DNA of 64,000 nucleotides from the sequence record NC_048792.1; one strand, given 5' to 3'. This document shows, piece after piece, positions 3,225 through 58,878 of this stretch. Within the stretch, counting starts at the first letter, position 1. Each line of letters opens with the position of its first letter. Position numbers and translations under genes: made by a program. A model generated the notes under the pieces. The model made no database searches. It saw only the letters and a program-made list of their open reading frames with translations, and was not told the DNA's origin.

Positions 3225-4571
3225 ATGAGTAAAGTAATACTGGCGGAAGATTCCACCTTAATCAATAAAAGTAGTTTACTCCTGGGCCAACCAAGCCCAG
3301 GGGTTTATGACCTTCTGATGACGATTGCGATCAACGCACTTCGTAAGCCTGAGGTCTTATTACCTGGCGCCCTGAAGGACGTCACCGAGCTGTTCAATAC
3401 CGAGCGATGGGGTAAGGAGGGGTCTATTCCTCTTGCCTCCCTGCCGCCTTCTATAACGTCTGTATCGGGAGCTGAATTCTCAATCAACACCAAAGAAACG
3501 ATTTTCGAGGATGGTGATTACGAGAAGATCGTGGATATAATTCCGATTGACGACCTGATGGGAGATTTCGGATTCAACCGATCTGAGGGCGCTTTCGCTG
3601 GCGTCTATATCTTGTCGTTCTCGAATAAACCGATCTCCTATATTGGATCGAGTGTAAACGTATACAAACGGTTAAAAGAGCACCTTAACGATTTGGCAAG
3701 TAATCGCCATTGTAACGGTAAGCTTCAGACCTTCTACAATCTACACAAAGACGACCCAGTAGTTAGGATCAAGGCACAGGTTATTCGTACCACTGAAACC
3801 CTGACTCCTTTCTGGTTAGAGAATGAGGCTTTGAATTACGTTAAACGTAAACAAGCCGTGTTCAATATCGGAGATACCGCCGAACTTCCTAAACTAGGCG
3901 TAAAAGCTTCTGACGAAACCCGCCGTAAACAATCTCTAGCTAAGATGGGTAAGGTGGCTTCTGATGAAACCAAACGTAAGATGTCTGAAGTACGGAAAGG
4001 TAGACCTAACTCCGAGGAACATATTCGGAATACAGCGACTGCCATTTCCAAAGCAATCATGGGTGACGGGATTAAGTATCCGTCCGCTTCAGAGTGCGCC
4101 CGTATTCTCGGCATCAATCAGTCTAGTGTCACCCGTAGGTTAGTTAATAAAAACTATCCAGGATGGTACATGATCGGCTCTGAACATGATCCTGATGTTA
4201 AATCAGGTAAGAAAGTAGAAACGGTATCTATTAACTCGGATAAGACTGGTTATCGGGTGGATGGTAAAATATACTTTACATCAACCGAAGTTGGAGAGGT
4301 TTACAACGTATCCTCGTCTACTGTAATCAGAAGGGCTCAGGATGATAGATTCCCTAACTGGGAAAAGATAGAAATCGATGACCCTGCTAAATTAGTCAGA
4401 TCAACTTCGAAAGCTGTTGTAGTAGATGGAGTCCATTACCCGTCTCTACGAATTGCCGCAGATACTTTAGGTAAACACTACAGTACTCTGTCAGCCAAGA
4501 TGGATCATCCGACTAATCACCCCAACACGTATTATGTTGGATCAGATAAAGACCCTTTAATTAAGAAGTAG
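3225..4571 (+). CDS. free-standing GIY-YIG homing endonuclease with NUMOD3 and HTH (NUMOD1/IENR1-like) repeats
   Basis: GVYIL...SYIGSS.NVYKRLKEH...HCNGKLQ catalytic domain, ASDETRRKQS/ASDETKRKMS NUMOD3 repeats, and three C-terminal DG..Y.S....A..LG HTH-like units. Confidence 0.85.
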   Translation: MSKVILAEDSTLINKSSLLLGQPSPGVYDLLMTIAINALRKPEVLLPGALKDVTELFNTERWGKEGSIPLASLPPSITSVSGAEFSINTKETIFEDGDYEKIVDIIPIDDLMGDFGFNRSEGAFAGVYILSFSNKPISYIGSSVNVYKRLKEHLNDLASNRHCNGKLQTFYNLHKDDPVVRIKAQVIRTTETLTPFWLENEALNYVKRKQAVFNIGDTAELPKLGVKASDETRRKQSLAKMGKVASDETKRKMSEVRKGRPNSEEHIRNTATAISKAIMGDGIKYPSASECARILGINQSSVTRRLVNKNYPGWYMIGSEHDPDVKSGKKVETVSINSDKTGYRVDGKIYFTSTEVGEVYNVSSSTVIRRAQDDRFPNWEKIEIDDPAKLVRSTSKAVVVDGVHYPSLRIAADTLGKHYSTLSAKMDHPTNHPNTYYVGSDKDPLIKK

Positions 4572-4609: not shown

Positions 4610-4646
4610 TCTTCACGGTTACTTATTTTTTTTTGGCTAGGCGGAC

Positions 4647-6962: not shown

Positions 6963-7376
6963 ATGCCAGTAAGCCGAAAACCTCGTAAGAAAACGAAGGT
7001 GGTGAAAGCTACATCTCGCCCCGAAGTAACCAGGGAAAAAGTCCTGGAACAAATCGAAGTAATCCGCCAGAAGCTGATTGAAATTTATCAACTTCTCGCT
7101 TATTACACCAAGCTGAAAGAAGCCGGGACCGTACCGGAAGACCAGCTGGAGTTATTCTCCGAAAAGATTCATACGATTGGCCAAGAGTTCAACACTTATG
7201 CGACCAGTCTGGCTAAGTTTAAGAAAGAAGTGGAAGCTTTGGAAATAGGCTCAGACTGCTACCACTTGCGCGAAGTACTTAGTGAGTACCTTGTCAGGAT
7301 GTCCGCTTTCCTGGTGCCAATGGCAGAGTGTACTGATATTATCCTTAAAGTAGAAGGAAAGAAAGATGTCAACTGA
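6963..7376 (+). CDS. hypothetical protein with basic N-terminus
   Basis: MPVSRKPRKKTK followed by a helical region. AAGGA SD upstream. Confidence 0.75.
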   Translation: MPVSRKPRKKTKVVKATSRPEVTREKVLEQIEVIRQKLIEIYQLLAYYTKLKEAGTVPEDQLELFSEKIHTIGQEFNTYATSLAKFKKEVEALEIGSDCYHLREVLSEYLVRMSAFLVPMAECTDIILKVEGKKDVN

Positions 7377-9111
7377 TTTAACTCCAGGCATGGATGTAAC
7401 CCCGCCTATCGACAACGAACAACCGGCAGCAGAACAAGTTATTGCTCCGGGGGTGGAAGTAGAAAAGAAGAACATCTTTGACGACTACGAAGTCGAAACT
7501 GATGAACTTCCACCAACTATGCAGGTTGAACAACCAGCGCCGGTTGAGAAAGAAGTTCCGGTAGAAATCCCGGAAGCAGATGTACCGGTAAAAGAACCGG
7601 AGCCTATTGAGGATCCTATCTATCCGGTAGAAGACGGTACCCTGAAGATTCAAGGTGACGTCTATAAACTGATCGACTCCAAAACCGGCGTGCAGTCCGG
7701 CATGGTATTGTTGAACACCACGCGTGAAGACTTCAACAACAAAACCGAACGCATGAGCGAAGAAGAAAGTAACAACATGGAAATTCTTCCGTTCCTGCTG
7801 ACTGGTACCAGTGCCCAAGACACCGCTTACCCAGGAGAAGGTCTGATCAAAGCTACAACTCGTATCGGTAGCCGCTGGCGTCAATACCTGACCCAGGCTA
7901 ACGACTCAACGCAACTGGGCCCTCGTCGTCATCGCTTTGCGCTGACTAAAGAACAAGGTGCAGTAGTAAGTGGCCACGGTGCAGTAGACCTCTTCATGGC
8001 AGGTACTAACCTGGGCCGCTCCGTACAGATTCCTCTGTGGCATTCTGGCTTCTGGGTAACCCTGCGTGCACCGACGGGTGCCTACCTGGCAGAGATCGAC
8101 CGTGCTCTGGCTTTCTCTCGTGAAGAGATCGGCCTGGATACTAACGGTGCTGTTGGTTCTAACGATGCGTTGGTATTCGACGAAGTTCTGTTGGACTCCG
8201 CATTGAAGTTGGTAACCAGCTCTACTCTGCCATTCTCCAAGAACCCATTGGAGCTGAAAGAGTTCATCGCTAAGAATGATATCCCGGTACTCATCTGGGG
8301 TATGGCAATGGCTGCATTCCCTGACGGTACTCCGATTGCAATTCCATGCGCCGAGTGCCACGATGTACAAACTGTTCATGCAAACCCGCTGCGCATGTTC
8401 TGGGTTGATGAGTCTCGCTTCACTGCGAAACAACTGGCTCACATGGGCCGCACCAATAAAGTCCAAACGAAAGTTGAAGACTTGGTTAAGTACCATGAAG
8501 AGTTCGAAATCCTGAACACCGCTAACTGGGAATACAACGGTCGTGTGTTCTACTTCAACGATCCGTCTGCAGATGAGTACCTGGTACGTGGGCGCGAGTG
8601 GATCAGTTCGATTAACCGCGCACTGTCAGAATCTCTGCGTTCTCAATACGATGATGCTGAGCACCGTGCCGCAGCAGTTCAGTCGGCGCTGTCTACCGAA
8701 GACCTGTGCCGCTTTGCACATTACATCAAAGAGATCAAGGTTCCGTCCCAGGATCACGAAGGTGGTTACTACCTGATTCAGGACATGCCTACTATCATTG
8801 ATGTCCTCCGTCAACTGGCCGCAGACGCGAAAGGTTCCATGGAACTGATGGGCGCTATCAACGACTTCGTCAATGACTCCATTGGTGCGTTGGTTGGGTT
8901 CCCTAACGTCGCTTGTCCAAGCTGTGGTAAATACCACTTGAACAAGAAAGGAGAAAGCACGGTTATCGTTCCGTTTAACCCTGCCACCGGTTTTTTTACC
9001 CTTGCACAACACAGGATCCGCGTCTCGGGTGGAATACCACTGACAAACCTACAGACATTAGGAGTGAGCGCTTTGGTAACCAGGGTCTCGGAGAGCGGGC
9101 TGCCGGTATAA
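7366..9111 (+). CDS. putative tail/baseplate assembly chaperone (T4 gp26-like or G-like), two CxxC motifs
   Basis: Contains CAEC and CPSCG, has a P/E/V-rich N-terminus, and a late GFF encoded by T_TTT_TTT. It is paired with a short downstream ORF, as in gp26/gp51-type pairs. Confidence 0.5.
   Translation: MSTDLTPGMDVTPPIDNEQPAAEQVIAPGVEVEKKNIFDDYEVETDELPPTMQVEQPAPVEKEVPVEIPEADVPVKEPEPIEDPIYPVEDGTLKIQGDVYKLIDSKTGVQSGMVLLNTTREDFNNKTERMSEEESNNMEILPFLLTGTSAQDTAYPGEGLIKATTRIGSRWRQYLTQANDSTQLGPRRHRFALTKEQGAVVSGHGAVDLFMAGTNLGRSVQIPLWHSGFWVTLRAPTGAYLAEIDRALAFSREEIGLDTNGAVGSNDALVFDEVLLDSALKLVTSSTLPFSKNPLELKEFIAKNDIPVLIWGMAMAAFPDGTPIAIPCAECHDVQTVHANPLRMFWVDESRFTAKQLAHMGRTNKVQTKVEDLVKYHEEFEILNTANWEYNGRVFYFNDPSADEYLVRGREWISSINRALSESLRSQYDDAEHRAAAVQSALSTEDLCRFAHYIKEIKVPSQDHEGGYYLIQDMPTIIDVLRQLAADAKGSMELMGAINDFVNDSIGALVGFPNVACPSCGKYHLNKKGESTVIVPFNPATGFFTLAQHRIRVSGGIPLTNLQTLGVSALVTRVSESGLPV
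8991..8997 (+). other. putative programmed -1 frameshift slippery site T_TTT_TTT
   Basis: The heptamer is in correct X_XXY_YYZ register. The -1 frame is closed by TAA at 8976 and open from 8979 through the 9153-9482 ORF. Confidence 0.7.
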
Positions 9112-9152
9112 TCGAAACCTACCACGGCCTAGGGAGTCTTCAGAGTAAGATA

Positions 9153-9482
9153 ATGTTACGGCGTGCGTACGATCTGGATAACGGGATTTATTCAGAAGCC
9201 TACGACAAAGCAACACCTTACTCTATTATTGAGATGAACCAAGTGGAGGCAGCAGCTAACAAAGGTAAGTTCGTAGAGCTACTGGAGTTCTTCCGTCTTC
9301 ATGAAGTAGGTAAGGAGCTAAATATGTCCTTTACTGAATTCATCAATCTCGATAACGACATAATCGAAACCATTAAGTTATGTTGCACGCGTTGGCGTTC
9401 AGAGGATGATAGTGCCACCCGTGAAGCATTGCAGAAAAGTGGGATCGACCCTAGGACGGGTAACCCTATTAAACCCGCGTAG
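9153..9482 (+). CDS. T-like / gp51-like chaperone domain, probably expressed as a frameshift fusion with 7366
   Basis: LNMSFTEFINLD resembles tail-chaperone C-terminal domains. The SD is poorly spaced, and the frame is open 174 nt upstream of the ATG. Confidence 0.6.
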   Translation: MLRRAYDLDNGIYSEAYDKATPYSIIEMNQVEAAANKGKFVELLEFFRLHEVGKELNMSFTEFINLDNDIIETIKLCCTRWRSEDDSATREALQKSGIDPRTGNPIKPA

Positions 9483-10260: not shown

Positions 10261-10771
10261 CGTTCGCTTTAACGAAGGTAGACTTTGCTGCGTAGAACCC
10301 TAACTTAGTCAGGAATCCCATTAGTGAGACTGAGGATAGGTACCCAGAGATTTCAACCATAGACCAATCTTCGGCGTGGATGAATCCATCGACCAGATAG
10401 CGTCCAGCTCCTTTGTTTCGATGCTCAGGTAGAACAAATACCCGATCAATAATAATTTTCTTAATACCTTCATCCGTTGTTTCCTTTCTTGCATTAATGA
10501 AGCCAATTGGTAGCTCATTGTCATAAACAAAGTAATTGCGTCTAGTGACATCGTCACCCCAGTAATGAAGAATGTGTTCTCGATTGCCACCTAGGCTAAA
10601 CGGTCGATAACCAACCGATTCCTCTATAGCGACTTGGTATTCCTTGTAGGCTTCCTTTGCCAGTCGTGCGTATTGCAACTCTCGACGAGAGCCAAGTATC
10701 TTTCCAGACACTTCACGAAAAACAAGTAGGGTGGAACCCACCCTACGTTGTGTTCTTAACAAAGTTCGCAT
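10256..10771 (-). CDS. GNAT family acetyltransferase
   Basis: IDRVFVLPEHRNKGAGRYLV acetyl-CoA motif A, and FLTKLGF motif B. Coupled to the polymerase gene (TAATG). Confidence 0.75.
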   Translation of the reverse strand: MRTLLRTQRRVGSTLLVFREVSGKILGSRRELQYARLAKEAYKEYQVAIEESVGYRPFSLGGNREHILHYWGDDVTRRNYFVYDNELPIGFINARKETTDEGIKKIIIDRVFVLPEHRNKGAGRYLVDGFIHAEDWSMVEISGYLSSVSLMGFLTKLGFYAAKSTFVKANA

Positions 10772-12516
10772 TAAGCGATACCTTTAGCTGCTTTGAATCG
10801 TTGCAGTAATTGCATAGCCGTCGGAGCGTTACAAACATTGACCATGATATCAACCGAGTTAACTTTACCAGAGACTAAGTTAAGACCTGCACGTCGTTGT
10901 TCTTCCATACTGACACCACGGATACGACACATTGCCCACTTGGTAGTTTCCTGAGACAAGTTCATCCAAACACCAGTAGACGGATAAGAAGACTTAACGT
11001 CGATATCCAGAACCCAACGAATGATCTTAGTGACCGAGTTAGGCATGTCTTCCAGTAGTTTGTTACCCATGTCAGGGTGAACCATGTGAGCCGATAGCGT
11101 AGAGATCCAACCGTCCAACGGAACGAGATGTTTATCCATCTCTTTTTCCATCTTATCGGAAACACCACTCAAGATATAACCACGATCCAGTAAGTCGAAG
11201 TAGAAGTCATCTGCTAACTTACGGCCTTGAGAACCATAAGAGTGCAAATCACTGTAACCACATTGAGCCGGGAAGGTGGAACGTAAGTCGAGTGTTACTT
11301 CGTCCAACAATTGTGCACCGATGTTATCGAACATGTTGTACACGCAATAAAAGATCTTGTTGTGACGTTGCATGTGTTTGTGCCAGTCCAGGCCTGTCGC
11401 GCGTAGATCGCCATCGCCTTTTAACTTACCAAACCCAAAGGTCTTCTCCAAGATTTTACCCAAGGCATAAGAGGACTCTTTGTTAAGGTGTTTACGTACA
11501 GCACGACGAACAGACATCTGGTCGACCCAGAAGAAGTTACTAGGGCAGTGAACTTTGTGCCAACGGTCACACGGGTCTTTTGACTCAGCAACACCGTTTG
11601 CATCAAATACCTTAGCCGCACCTTCAATCAATTTGAAGTAACGGAAGTCCTTAGGAACTTTAGGATCGCAGAAGATCTCTTCTGGAGTAAAACCACGACG
11701 CTCAATTGCCTGAATCATTTTACCGGTATCGTACGGTAAGTTCCAGATGGACAGCATATCAGGCTTAAGAACGTTGTGCAATTTATCGAAGATCGCTTGA
11801 ACTGCTTCGAACTCATCGTCGACAATCTCGACGTGGATATTAAAGTCGTGAACAATGCCACGTTTAGAGAAGAAGTCAAATCCTTCTTTACGATTATCGA
11901 TTTCATGTAGAATAGGTTTTACTTCACGCTCGTAACACGCCTTAACCTCTTCGACGAAGTTAGGGTTTGTTCCGGCGTAGTGTTTGGTAACGAATTGATA
12001 AACTTCATTACCGCATGACACAGAGATCATGTTGATCTTGTTAGTACCGTAAGTCACATCGAATTCGATATCGAGGTGAGCAACACGATACTCTGACTTT
12101 AAGTCAGGATACTTGTTCATGTAAGCGTGCTTAAGAAGAACCGTAGAGGTTACATCCGTACCATAAAGGTAAGGGTTACGGTTTAACATCTTAAGGCCGC
12201 CACGCATTTTCAATTTACGTTGAATGTCACCGACCATTTCAGCCTGAGTACATTCATAACGACGAACGTTATCCAGTTTCTCCCAGACACGTTTGTCTTT
12301 GTGACGACGTTGAGATTCCAGCGTAATGAAATAAGGACGCTGGTAGTTACGGATGAAGCGAAGGTTAGGTAACTTACGTCCATCCTTCAAGTGAACTACT
12401 TCTTTAATGACTACTAAGTCATCGGAATAACTATCTTGCTTTGGTGCGTAAGACGCGTGCTTGAACTCAAAACCAAGGATATCATCTTTGGTGAAAGCGG
12501 GTTTTACTTGAGACAT
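10771..12516 (-). CDS. split family-B DNA polymerase, 3'-5' exonuclease plus motif A half (phiKZ gp82-like)
   Basis: ExoI HLDIEFD, ExoII IWNLPYD, ExoIII YNMFD, and PolB motif A LDIDVKSSYPS. No motif B or C. Confidence 0.85.
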   Translation of the reverse strand: MSQVKPAFTKDDILGFEFKHASYAPKQDSYSDDLVVIKEVVHLKDGRKLPNLRFIRNYQRPYFITLESQRRHKDKRVWEKLDNVRRYECTQAEMVGDIQRKLKMRGGLKMLNRNPYLYGTDVTSTVLLKHAYMNKYPDLKSEYRVAHLDIEFDVTYGTNKINMISVSCGNEVYQFVTKHYAGTNPNFVEEVKACYEREVKPILHEIDNRKEGFDFFSKRGIVHDFNIHVEIVDDEFEAVQAIFDKLHNVLKPDMLSIWNLPYDTGKMIQAIERRGFTPEEIFCDPKVPKDFRYFKLIEGAAKVFDANGVAESKDPCDRWHKVHCPSNFFWVDQMSVRRAVRKHLNKESSYALGKILEKTFGFGKLKGDGDLRATGLDWHKHMQRHNKIFYCVYNMFDNIGAQLLDEVTLDLRSTFPAQCGYSDLHSYGSQGRKLADDFYFDLLDRGYILSGVSDKMEKEMDKHLVPLDGWISTLSAHMVHPDMGNKLLEDMPNSVTKIIRWVLDIDVKSSYPSTGVWMNLSQETTKWAMCRIRGVSMEEQRRAGLNLVSGKVNSVDIMVNVCNAPTAMQLLQRFKAAKGIA

Positions 12517-49560: not shown

Positions 49561-49590
49561 GTGTCAGCTATTCAGCTTTTCTTTTTTTGC

Positions 49591-58831: not shown

Positions 58832-58878
58832 TTTTTATGCTTACTTATTTTTTTATATTAAATCTTCCAGAGGGTCAT

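Follow-up and report, generated by a model that had tools for sequence, protein, structure and literature searches.

A probable -1 frameshift at a conserved T-run in a gene of Serratia phage Moabite and its phiKZ-like relatives

Results

The 098/099 locus of phage Moabite

The window analyzed comprises 64,000 nucleotides of the genome of Serratia phage Moabite (NC_048792.1). The goal of this study was to examine a sequence-only reading, which had proposed that a T-run near the end of one gene directs a programmed -1 frameshift into the next open reading frame and that the pair is the phiKZ-like equivalent of the lambda G/GT tail chaperones. The features of the locus are the following:

7366..9111 (+), 0-frame gene CPT_Moabite_098, 581 aa, a member of phrog_4585
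8347..8358 (+), first CxxC pair (Cys328, Cys331) of a probable Cys4 metal site
8914..8925 (+), second CxxC pair (Cys517, Cys520), 23 residues before the Phe-Phe slip codons
8976..8978 (+), TAA closing the -1 frame, six codons before the -1-frame codon at which reading resumes (8997)
8991..8997 (+), slippery heptamer T_TTT_TTT, proposed site of the -1 slip
8991..9111 (+), dual-coding overlap of the 0-frame tail and the -1 frame
8997..9482 (+), -1-frame coding segment of 161 codons plus stop, containing the annotated gene CPT_Moabite_099 (9153-9482, phrog_12109)
9112..9152 (+), stretch annotated as intergenic that is open in the -1 frame

CPT_Moabite_098 is a homologue of phiKZ gp077, 201phi2-1 gp136, Goslar gp081, and SPN3US ACQ60_gp227. 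The observation made from the sequence alone was correct. The codons GGT TTT TTT ACC at 8989-9000, which encode Phe543-Phe544 at TTT TTT, place the heptamer in phase, and the -1 frame is open from 8979 to the stop at 9480-9482. In that frame no ATG, GTG, or TTG precedes the ATG at 9153; only ATT, ATA, and ATC occur. The nearest Shine-Dalgarno-like sequence that had been pointed out, GGGAG, lies at 9133-9137, 15 nt before this ATG. The predicted products are 581 aa for the 0 frame and 544 + 161 = 705 aa for the long form. Both strands of the window were scanned for an in-phase heptamer near an ORF end with a long -1 extension, and only this site was found. The window contains only five A/T runs of 7 or more. 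The site is more than a chance occurrence.

Conservation of the T-run and of the -1 frame

Conservation of the slippery site and of an open -1 frame in homologous gene pairs had been named beforehand as a test of the proposal, and its absence as grounds for rejection. We examined 87 homologous loci (82 distinct; 20-100% protein identity), including phiKZ, Goslar, SPN3US, 201phi2-1, and 80 IMG/VR contigs. All of them have a run of 5-9 T on the same Phe-Phe codons, 36-135 nt before the 0-frame stop. After the run, the -1 frame is open for 150-203 codons (median 163), the +1 frame for a median of 10, and the 0 frame for 11-44. In a survey of 85 loci (84 homologous loci and the window), T_TTT_TTY was found in 74, whereas the other 11 have non-canonical, although near-canonical, sites, namely G_TTT_TTY or a run of only 5-6 T with one slippery codon.

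Selection is visible at the nucleotide level. Phe codons at the site are 138 TTT to 22 TTC (86% TTT), and every TTC is the last codon, which keeps the heptamer slippery. Elsewhere in the same genes the count is 401 to 643 (38% TTT), and loci with 0-20% TTT elsewhere still have T_TTT_TTT at the site. Only one other T-run of 6 or more occurs in 96.6 kb of these genes.

No fused form was seen at the 87 loci. Of the 1,735 family clusters (50% identity), all of the top 150 end within about 16 residues of the profile end. In 173 representatives the protein ends 11-55 residues after the Phe-Phe, with Phe543 conserved in 100% and Phe544 in 97%. Free-standing or fused copies of the -1 domain, whose alignment holds no stretch conserved enough to seed such a survey, were not sought independently.

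Coding signatures of the -1 frame

The downstream frame has no conserved start of its own. The first ATG in the -1 frame lies 2-157 codons after the site and is absent in one locus, and the ATG at 9153 of Moabite is TTG in phage Totoro. In 50 of 79 distinct peptides, the first ATG/GTG/TTG lies downstream of a 91%-conserved Phe, and only 3 of 81 first ATGs have an SD-like 4-mer. The -1 peptide aligns from the slip site onward. The phrog_12109 match improves when the stretch before the ATG is included, and runs 17 residues upstream of ATG 9153. In phiKZ, the corresponding 218-nt gap is open and conserved in the -1 frame.

The overlap at 8991-9111 is the most conserved stretch between Moabite and Totoro. 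Nucleotide identity is 91.7% in the overlap against 76% and 73% in the flanking coding sequence, and third-position identity is 84% (0 frame) and 89% (-1 frame) against 49-54% outside.

Search for stimulatory elements

The two short hairpins pointed out downstream of the heptamer exist, but they are weak (-7.8 kcal/mol over 40 nt). They start 18 nt after the heptamer, and one stem pair of the first hairpin is broken without compensation in Totoro. Across the 82 distinct loci, the 70 nt downstream fold no better than control stretches (mean z -0.44 against -0.04 and -0.53). An SD-like 4-mer lies upstream of the site in 4 of 82 loci, against 8% in controls. Neither a conserved stimulatory hairpin, including the two proposed, nor an upstream SD-like element was found, so the efficiency of the slip may be low.

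Protein-level data

In the LC-MS/MS table of Goslar virions, gp081 is listed with 24 peptides (about 22 copies) and gp082, identified as a database entry of its own, with 1 peptide (about 3 copies), i.e. about 1/7 of gp081. This is compatible with a minor long form, but it is only indirect evidence: non-structural enzymes appear at similar levels in the same table, so the detection may be carry-over, and there is no direct protein or ribosome-footprint evidence for the stretch 8997-9152. The supplements of the Grad-seq paper on phiKZ hold no entry for gp077 or gp076.4. The "gp77" of the Goslar structure paper is a different protein, the capsid decorator of Goslar.

Predicted folds and remote similarities

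Pfam, NCBIfam, and PDB sequence searches with 098, with the -1 segment, and with their alignments gave nothing significant, and no Pfam, NCBIfam, or PHROG chaperone family was matched. In the structure model of 098 (pLDDT 75.7, pTM 0.75), residues 1-78 are predicted to be disordered and the rest to adopt an alpha/beta fold. The -1 segment is predicted as a 27-residue disordered linker followed by a helical domain; the confidence of this model is low (pLDDT 66.6). Foldseek against PDB gave no match for either model.

Against BFVD, Foldseek matched the 098 model to models named "Baseplate hub assembly protein, bacteriophage T4-like" (E 1.5e-4 with a TM of 0.55 on the target, and E 6e-3), which points to a shared predicted fold. 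It also matched phage G Gp181 (prob 0.98, E 0.1) and gave five weak "tail assembly chaperone" hits at E 0.26-3.2, of which the Gp181 match is the firmer; membership in a chaperone fold or sequence family is thereby left undecided.

The T4 gp26/gp51 family (PF12322, phrog_150) was examined further. The gathering score of PF12322 was not reached: the best hit was E 0.33, in 1 of 29 members, whereas T4 gp26 and gp51 themselves score 216 and 178 bits. Two of the 29 members matched phrog_150, the best (P0023 in our set) at E 1.6e-4 with residues 348-485 against profile positions 124-226, which leaves the match to phrog_150 undecided. Profile-profile comparison with hhalign, including a local run of 173 sequences against 12, was not significant (probabilities 4.6% and 13.6%). 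Only the CxxC stretch aligned, and the T4-side alignment was shallow.

Discussion

We conclude that gene 098 very probably carries a programmed -1 ribosomal frameshift. In this view, most ribosomes read through T_TTT_TTT in the 0 frame and finish at 9111, giving a 581-aa protein with a 37-residue C-terminal tail. A fraction would slip back one base while the two tRNA-Phe sit on TTT TTT and continue from 8997 to 9482, giving a 705-aa protein composed of the same 544 N-terminal residues, a flexible linker, and a roughly 130-residue helical domain. Gene 099 would therefore be the 3' part of the long isoform and not a gene of its own. The slippery run alone seems to be the signal, and the arrangement would fix the ratio of the two isoforms. 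The site, its phase, both frames, and their conservation and coding signatures across the family rest directly on the data presented here, whereas slippage by the ribosome rather than by the RNA polymerase, its efficiency, and the function are inferred.

The main alternative is transcriptional slippage, in which the phage or host RNA polymerase stutters on the T-run and adds one U to a fraction of the mRNAs, whose ordinary translation gives the same long form. As the outcome at the protein level would be identical, the conservation evidence fits equally well, and the sequence alone does not separate the two. The signal is a pure homopolymer of 7-9 T in 66 of 82 distinct loci, no ribosomal stimulator was found, and these phages use their own multisubunit RNA polymerases, the slippage behavior of which was not examined. 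However, 16 of the 82 loci have only 5-6 T, which is short for efficient polymerase slippage, while one or two tRNA-Phe can still re-pair. Where the run is interrupted, the interruption is a C at the wobble position of the last Phe codon, which preserves tRNA re-pairing. The run is always placed such that a 0-frame TTT codon can re-pair in the -1 frame, although Phe-Phe coding also enforces this placement. We regard polymerase slippage as unlikely on balance.

Two further readings appear considerably less likely. That 098 and 099 are separate genes, with 099 starting at ATG 9153 and the T-run kept only because the protein needs Phe-Phe, agrees with the annotation of Moabite and of every other record inspected, with the conservation of both Phe residues in the 0 frame, and with the separate database entry for Goslar gp082. 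It is very unlikely in view of the preference for TTT against the local codon bias, the wandering start codon, the conserved motifs upstream of any canonical start, the near absence of SD-like sequences, the open gap in phiKZ, and the dual-coding signature. A homopolymer sequencing error splitting one long ORF, or a decaying pseudogene, is the least probable. Homopolymers are error-prone on some sequencing platforms, but the same -1 relation is seen in 87 loci from independent projects and platforms with run lengths of 5 to 9, ten Moabite-like genomes agree at 98.9-100% identity, both frames are under purifying selection, and no in-frame version appears among the top 150 family clusters.

The interpretation offered by the sequence-only reading was only partly supported: the recoding claim is strongly supported, but the label of a G/GT-type tail chaperone pair only weakly. 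The codon-level, dual-coding, and start-codon evidence all indicate that the -1 stretch upstream of the annotated ATG is translated. As in the tail assembly chaperone frameshifts of lambda gpG/gpGT and P2 gpE/gpE+E' (Levin et al., 1993; Christie et al., 2002; Xu, Hendrix and Duda, 2004), a -1 slip would occur at a heptamer near the 3' end of the first ORF, the second ORF has no start of its own, and the short and long forms share the N-terminal part. In those systems, too, the frameshift is conserved while the sequences diverge beyond recognition, and no strong stimulatory structure is needed. The site is also T-rich, as had been stated for P2. The upstream protein, however, is about four times larger than such chaperones (about 100-150 aa for the short form and 250-300 aa for the long form); family members are 453-657 aa, and most have a Cys4 site. 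The locus is not placed between tail tube and tape-measure genes. Its neighbors are RNA polymerase subunit genes, hypothetical genes, a GNAT gene, and a DNA polymerase gene, with the same synteny in phiKZ, Goslar, SPN3US, and FBKp24. Neither binding to the tape measure protein nor absence from mature virions was tested; in the Goslar virion preparations gp081 is seen at about 22 copies, but cytoplasmic enzymes are seen at similar levels.

The T4 gp26 and gp51 proteins share with the family the remote fold and phrog_150 matches described above. A CxxC motif is invariant in T4 gp26/gp51, and T4 gene 26 also yields two products, 26 and 26'. The T4 proteins are smaller (208-249 aa), the second product of gene 26 stems from an in-frame internal part (annotated gene 26') and not from a frameshift, and the T4 genes lie beside hub genes 27-29, whereas no hub or tape-measure gene is next to 098. 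In T7 gene 10A/10B, a -1 slip on Phe codons near the end of a phage late gene likewise gives a minor, C-terminally extended form, but of a capsid protein with a short extension; here, a whole domain of about 160 aa would be added to a non-capsid protein. E. coli dnaX (tau/gamma) also makes a fixed-ratio pair of isoforms by -1 frameshift at a homopolymeric heptamer. There, the frameshift shortens the product and depends on an upstream SD-like element and a downstream hairpin, neither of which was found here.

Our best guess for the function, which is tentative and no better than an even chance, is a baseplate-hub or tail assembly factor remotely related to T4 gp26/gp51, with the long form bringing an extra binding domain as the T part does in lambda GT. 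A more far-reaching possibility, which we consider doubtful but which the data do not rule out, is that the gp77 family is the missing tail/baseplate-hub assembly chaperone of phiKZ-like jumbo phages, evolutionarily linked both to T4 gp26/gp51 and to the classical tail assembly chaperones. If so, the conserved tail-gene frameshift of Xu, Hendrix and Duda would extend, in a much enlarged and relocated form, to the largest contractile-tailed phages, and making two isoforms of this assembly factor would be a near-universal requirement of long-tailed phages. Independently of this, the slip might be made by the phage's own non-canonical RNA polymerase, which would make it a virus-polymerase-specific recoding signal.

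Public annotations do not mention the frameshift. Literature searches on frameshifting in phiKZ, SPN3US, Chimalliviridae, and jumbo phages in general, and on a phiKZ tail assembly chaperone, found no description of it, although prior mention is not excluded because most subscription journals were outside the search. If our interpretation is right, a conserved gene of phiKZ-like jumbo phages, with 219 GenBank phage records, is mis-annotated everywhere. In every one of the ten public annotations opened, and under every match listed for the rest, it is shown as two "hypothetical proteins"; in phiKZ it is shown as a gene, a 218-nt empty gap, and a small ORF. These phages are intensively studied for their nucleus-like compartment and for therapy. 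Correcting the annotation would add an isoform of about 700 aa to their proteomes, explain why the small downstream ORF has no conserved start, and remove spurious small ORFs called in the gap. The locus would also be a clean natural example of a frameshift kept by the slippery run alone across very deep divergence and across 27-62% G+C, and it would give a concrete lead to how the baseplate hub or tail of these phages is assembled, a part of the virion that recent cryo-EM work left partly unmodelled.

Sequence context of the slippery site

The region is 100% identical to Serratia phage Moabite (MK994515, 273,933 bp, genus Moabitevirus), with window position equal to record position minus 62,000. 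The features relevant to the proposed frameshift are as follows.

7366-9111: upstream ORF CPT_Moabite_098, annotated 'hypothetical protein'
9153-9482: downstream ORF CPT_Moabite_099, annotated 'hypothetical protein'
8989-9000: 0-frame codons GGT TTT TTT ACC
8991-8997: heptamer T_TTT_TTT, in phase with the 0-frame codons
8976: TAA in the -1 frame, which is then open to 9482
8991-9111: overlap of the 0 frame and the -1 frame
8347-8358 and 8914-8925: the two CxxC pairs of 098

All features that the sequence-only reading had described were found to be correct. No ATG, GTG, or TTG lies in the -1 frame before 9153, and GGGAG lies 15 nt before that ATG. The products would be 581 aa and 544+161 = 705 aa. 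The two short hairpins noted downstream of the site are real but weak (-7.8 kcal/mol) and begin 18 nt after the heptamer, and one stem pair is lost without compensation in the nearest distinct relative, Totoro. A scan of both strands of the whole window with the same criteria returned this site only. The only other A/T homopolymer runs of 7 or more in the 64-kb window, at 1542-1548, 4626-4634, 49582-49588, and 58848-58854, do not include an in-phase heptamer near an ORF end with a long -1 extension. The interpretation attached to the site, a programmed -1 frameshift in a G/GT-type tail chaperone pair, was supported in part, strongly for the recoding but only weakly for the chaperone label.

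Conservation of the slippery run

Homologues of 098 were found by tblastn in 219 phage records, including phiKZ (PHIKZ077), Goslar (gp081), SPN3US, 201phi2-1 (gp136, noted there as similar to phiKZ gp77 and EL gp47), and many Erwinia, Vibrio, Ralstonia, and Klebsiella jumbo phages. A profile search returned 1,735 clusters at 50% identity. Persistence of the slippery heptamer and of an open -1 frame in homologous gene pairs had been put forward in advance as a check, and we examined 87 loci, comprising Moabite, Totoro, FBKp24, SPLA10, phiKZ, Goslar, SPN3US, and 80 IMG/VR contigs. Every locus has a T-run of 5-9 on the codons that encode the conserved Phe-Phe, 36-135 nt before the 0-frame stop. 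After the run, the -1 frame stays open for 150-203 codons, whereas the +1 frame stays open for a median of 10. In a survey of 85 of these loci (the related loci L002-L085 and the window), 74 have a canonical in-phase T_TTT_TTY, and the other 11 have G_TTT_TTY or a 5-6-T run with one slippery Phe codon. The G+C content of these genes ranges from 27 to 62%.

The run is selected as nucleotides and not only as Phe-Phe. At the site, the Phe codons are 138 TTT to 22 TTC, and all 22 TTC are the last codon, which keeps the heptamer slippery. Elsewhere in the same genes the count is 401 TTT to 643 TTC, and several G+C-rich loci that use no TTT at all elsewhere still have T_TTT_TTT here. The base before the first Phe codon was counted as T in 51 of 82 distinct loci, against 24 expected. 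Only one other run of six or more T occurs in 96.6 kb of these genes.

Neither fused nor separate versions were encountered among the clusters and records examined. Among the top 150 of the family clusters, every protein ends within about 16 residues of the profile end, and in 173 representatives the protein ends 11-55 residues after the Phe-Phe. None of the records inspected annotates a joined CDS.

Coding potential of the -1 frame upstream of the annotated start

Five lines of evidence agree that the -1 stretch upstream of the annotated start is coding. The first ATG in the -1 frame lies anywhere from 2 to 157 codons after the site, and one locus has none. Moabite's annotated ATG start of gene 099 at 9153 is TTG in Totoro (position 4675 of L002, the Totoro locus), whose first in-frame ATG lies 79 codons after the slip site. 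The -1 peptides align from the slip site on, and a Phe conserved in 91% of sequences lies about 25 codons after the slip. In 50 of 79 distinct peptides, the first ATG/GTG/TTG lies downstream of this Phe. Only 3 of 81 first ATGs have an SD-like 4-mer in front. When the upstream stretch was included, the match of the Moabite sequence to phrog_12109 extended 17 residues beyond the ATG, and E improved from 1.6e-6 to 5.5e-8.

Between Moabite and Totoro, the overlap 8991-9111 is the best conserved stretch of the region, with 91.7% identity against 76% in the rest of 098 and 73% in 099. Third-position identity in the overlap is 84% (0 frame) and 89% (-1 frame), against 54% and 49% outside. This is what two overlapping translated frames produce.

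In phiKZ (AF399011), the -1 frame of gp077 runs open across the 218-nt stretch annotated as intergenic between PHIKZ077 and PHIKZ076.4 (positions 3695-3912 of L005, the phiKZ locus). This stretch is conserved at 99% or more in 46 phiKZ-type records, in which the 165-residue -1 peptide is at least 99% identical, and it is probably coding sequence of the long isoform. In some phiKZ-like records, small opposite-strand ORFs (32 and 37 codons) are annotated inside that same stretch, for example CDS0335 and CDS0336 of Pseudomonas phage KEN49 (positions 2000-2335 of L105, the KEN49 locus). These are probably spurious gene calls filling the apparent gap.

Probable mechanism of the proposed recoding

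The simplest reading is tandem -1 slippage of tRNA-Phe on T_TTT_TTT with no accessory element. The downstream 70 nt folds no better than controls, and no conserved SD-like motif precedes the run. The short form keeps a 37-residue tail, predicted to be partly helical, while the long form replaces this tail with a disordered linker of about 27 residues and a helical domain (pLDDT 66.6, no fold match). The two frames were searched and modelled separately and not as a joined sequence.

Polymerase slippage on the run would give the same proteins and is not excluded by the sequence. We rate it lower because 16 of the 82 distinct loci have only 5-6 T, and because, where the run is broken, it is broken by the one change that keeps tRNA re-pairing. 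Independent initiation of 099 and a sequencing artefact are both contradicted by the conservation and coding evidence. The one piece of protein data found is the Goslar virion LC-MS/MS table, which lists gp081 with 24 peptides (about 22 copies per virion by the authors' scale) and gp082 with one peptide (about 3 copies). This fits a minor long form. However, enzymes such as thymidylate synthase appear at similar levels, and the evidence is therefore weak. The mechanism itself is of a known kind. This instance appears to be undescribed, as no mention was found in the literature searched, from which subscription journals were absent, and all annotations seen call the two parts separate hypothetical proteins.

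Predicted structure and possible function of the 098 family

Searches with 098 gave no Pfam, NCBIfam, or PDB sequence match. An AlphaFold model built from 29 sequences (pLDDT 75.7, pTM 0.75; residues 1-78 disordered) has no PDB fold match. Against BFVD, the model matches, after the jumbo-phage homologues, models named 'Baseplate hub assembly protein, bacteriophage T4-like' (E 1.5e-4 and 6e-3) and Bacillus phage G Gp181 (prob 0.98), which we infer from the gene order in PMC12484599 to be a tail assembly chaperone. Several weak 'tail assembly chaperone' hits were also obtained.

T4 gp26 and gp51 both belong to PF12322 and phrog_150. They are paralogues (25% identity) with an invariant CxxC, and gene 26 also makes two products, annotated 26 and 26' (genes 26, 26', and 51 at positions 3803-5229 of L088, the phage T4 locus). 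Two of 29 members of the 098 family hit phrog_150, the best at E 1.6e-4, and one hits PF12322 at E 0.33, but profile-profile comparison is not significant. Four cysteines of 098 (328, 331, 517, 520), forming the two CxxC pairs, are all present in 140 of 173 representatives and all absent in the remaining 33. This points to a single Cys4 metal site and suggests that whole lineages have lost it as a unit.

The gene neighbourhood (RNA polymerase subunit genes, small hypothetical genes, GNAT, DNA polymerase) is conserved and holds no tube or tape-measure gene. The DNA polymerase ORF (10771-12516; phrog_3011, annotated in Moabite as 'ribonuclease H-like superfamily protein') lies 1.7 kb from 098 on the opposite strand and is likewise exactly 581 aa long, but the equal length is a coincidence and the proteins are unrelated. 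An I-TevI-like homing endonuclease gene (3225-4571) sits next to the phage RNA polymerase subunit gene, in the same arrangement as in Totoro; whether it marks an intron or a free-standing insertion was not examined. We do not assign the protein to the G/GT chaperone family; our best guess, held at a little under even odds, is an assembly factor remotely like T4 gp26/gp51.
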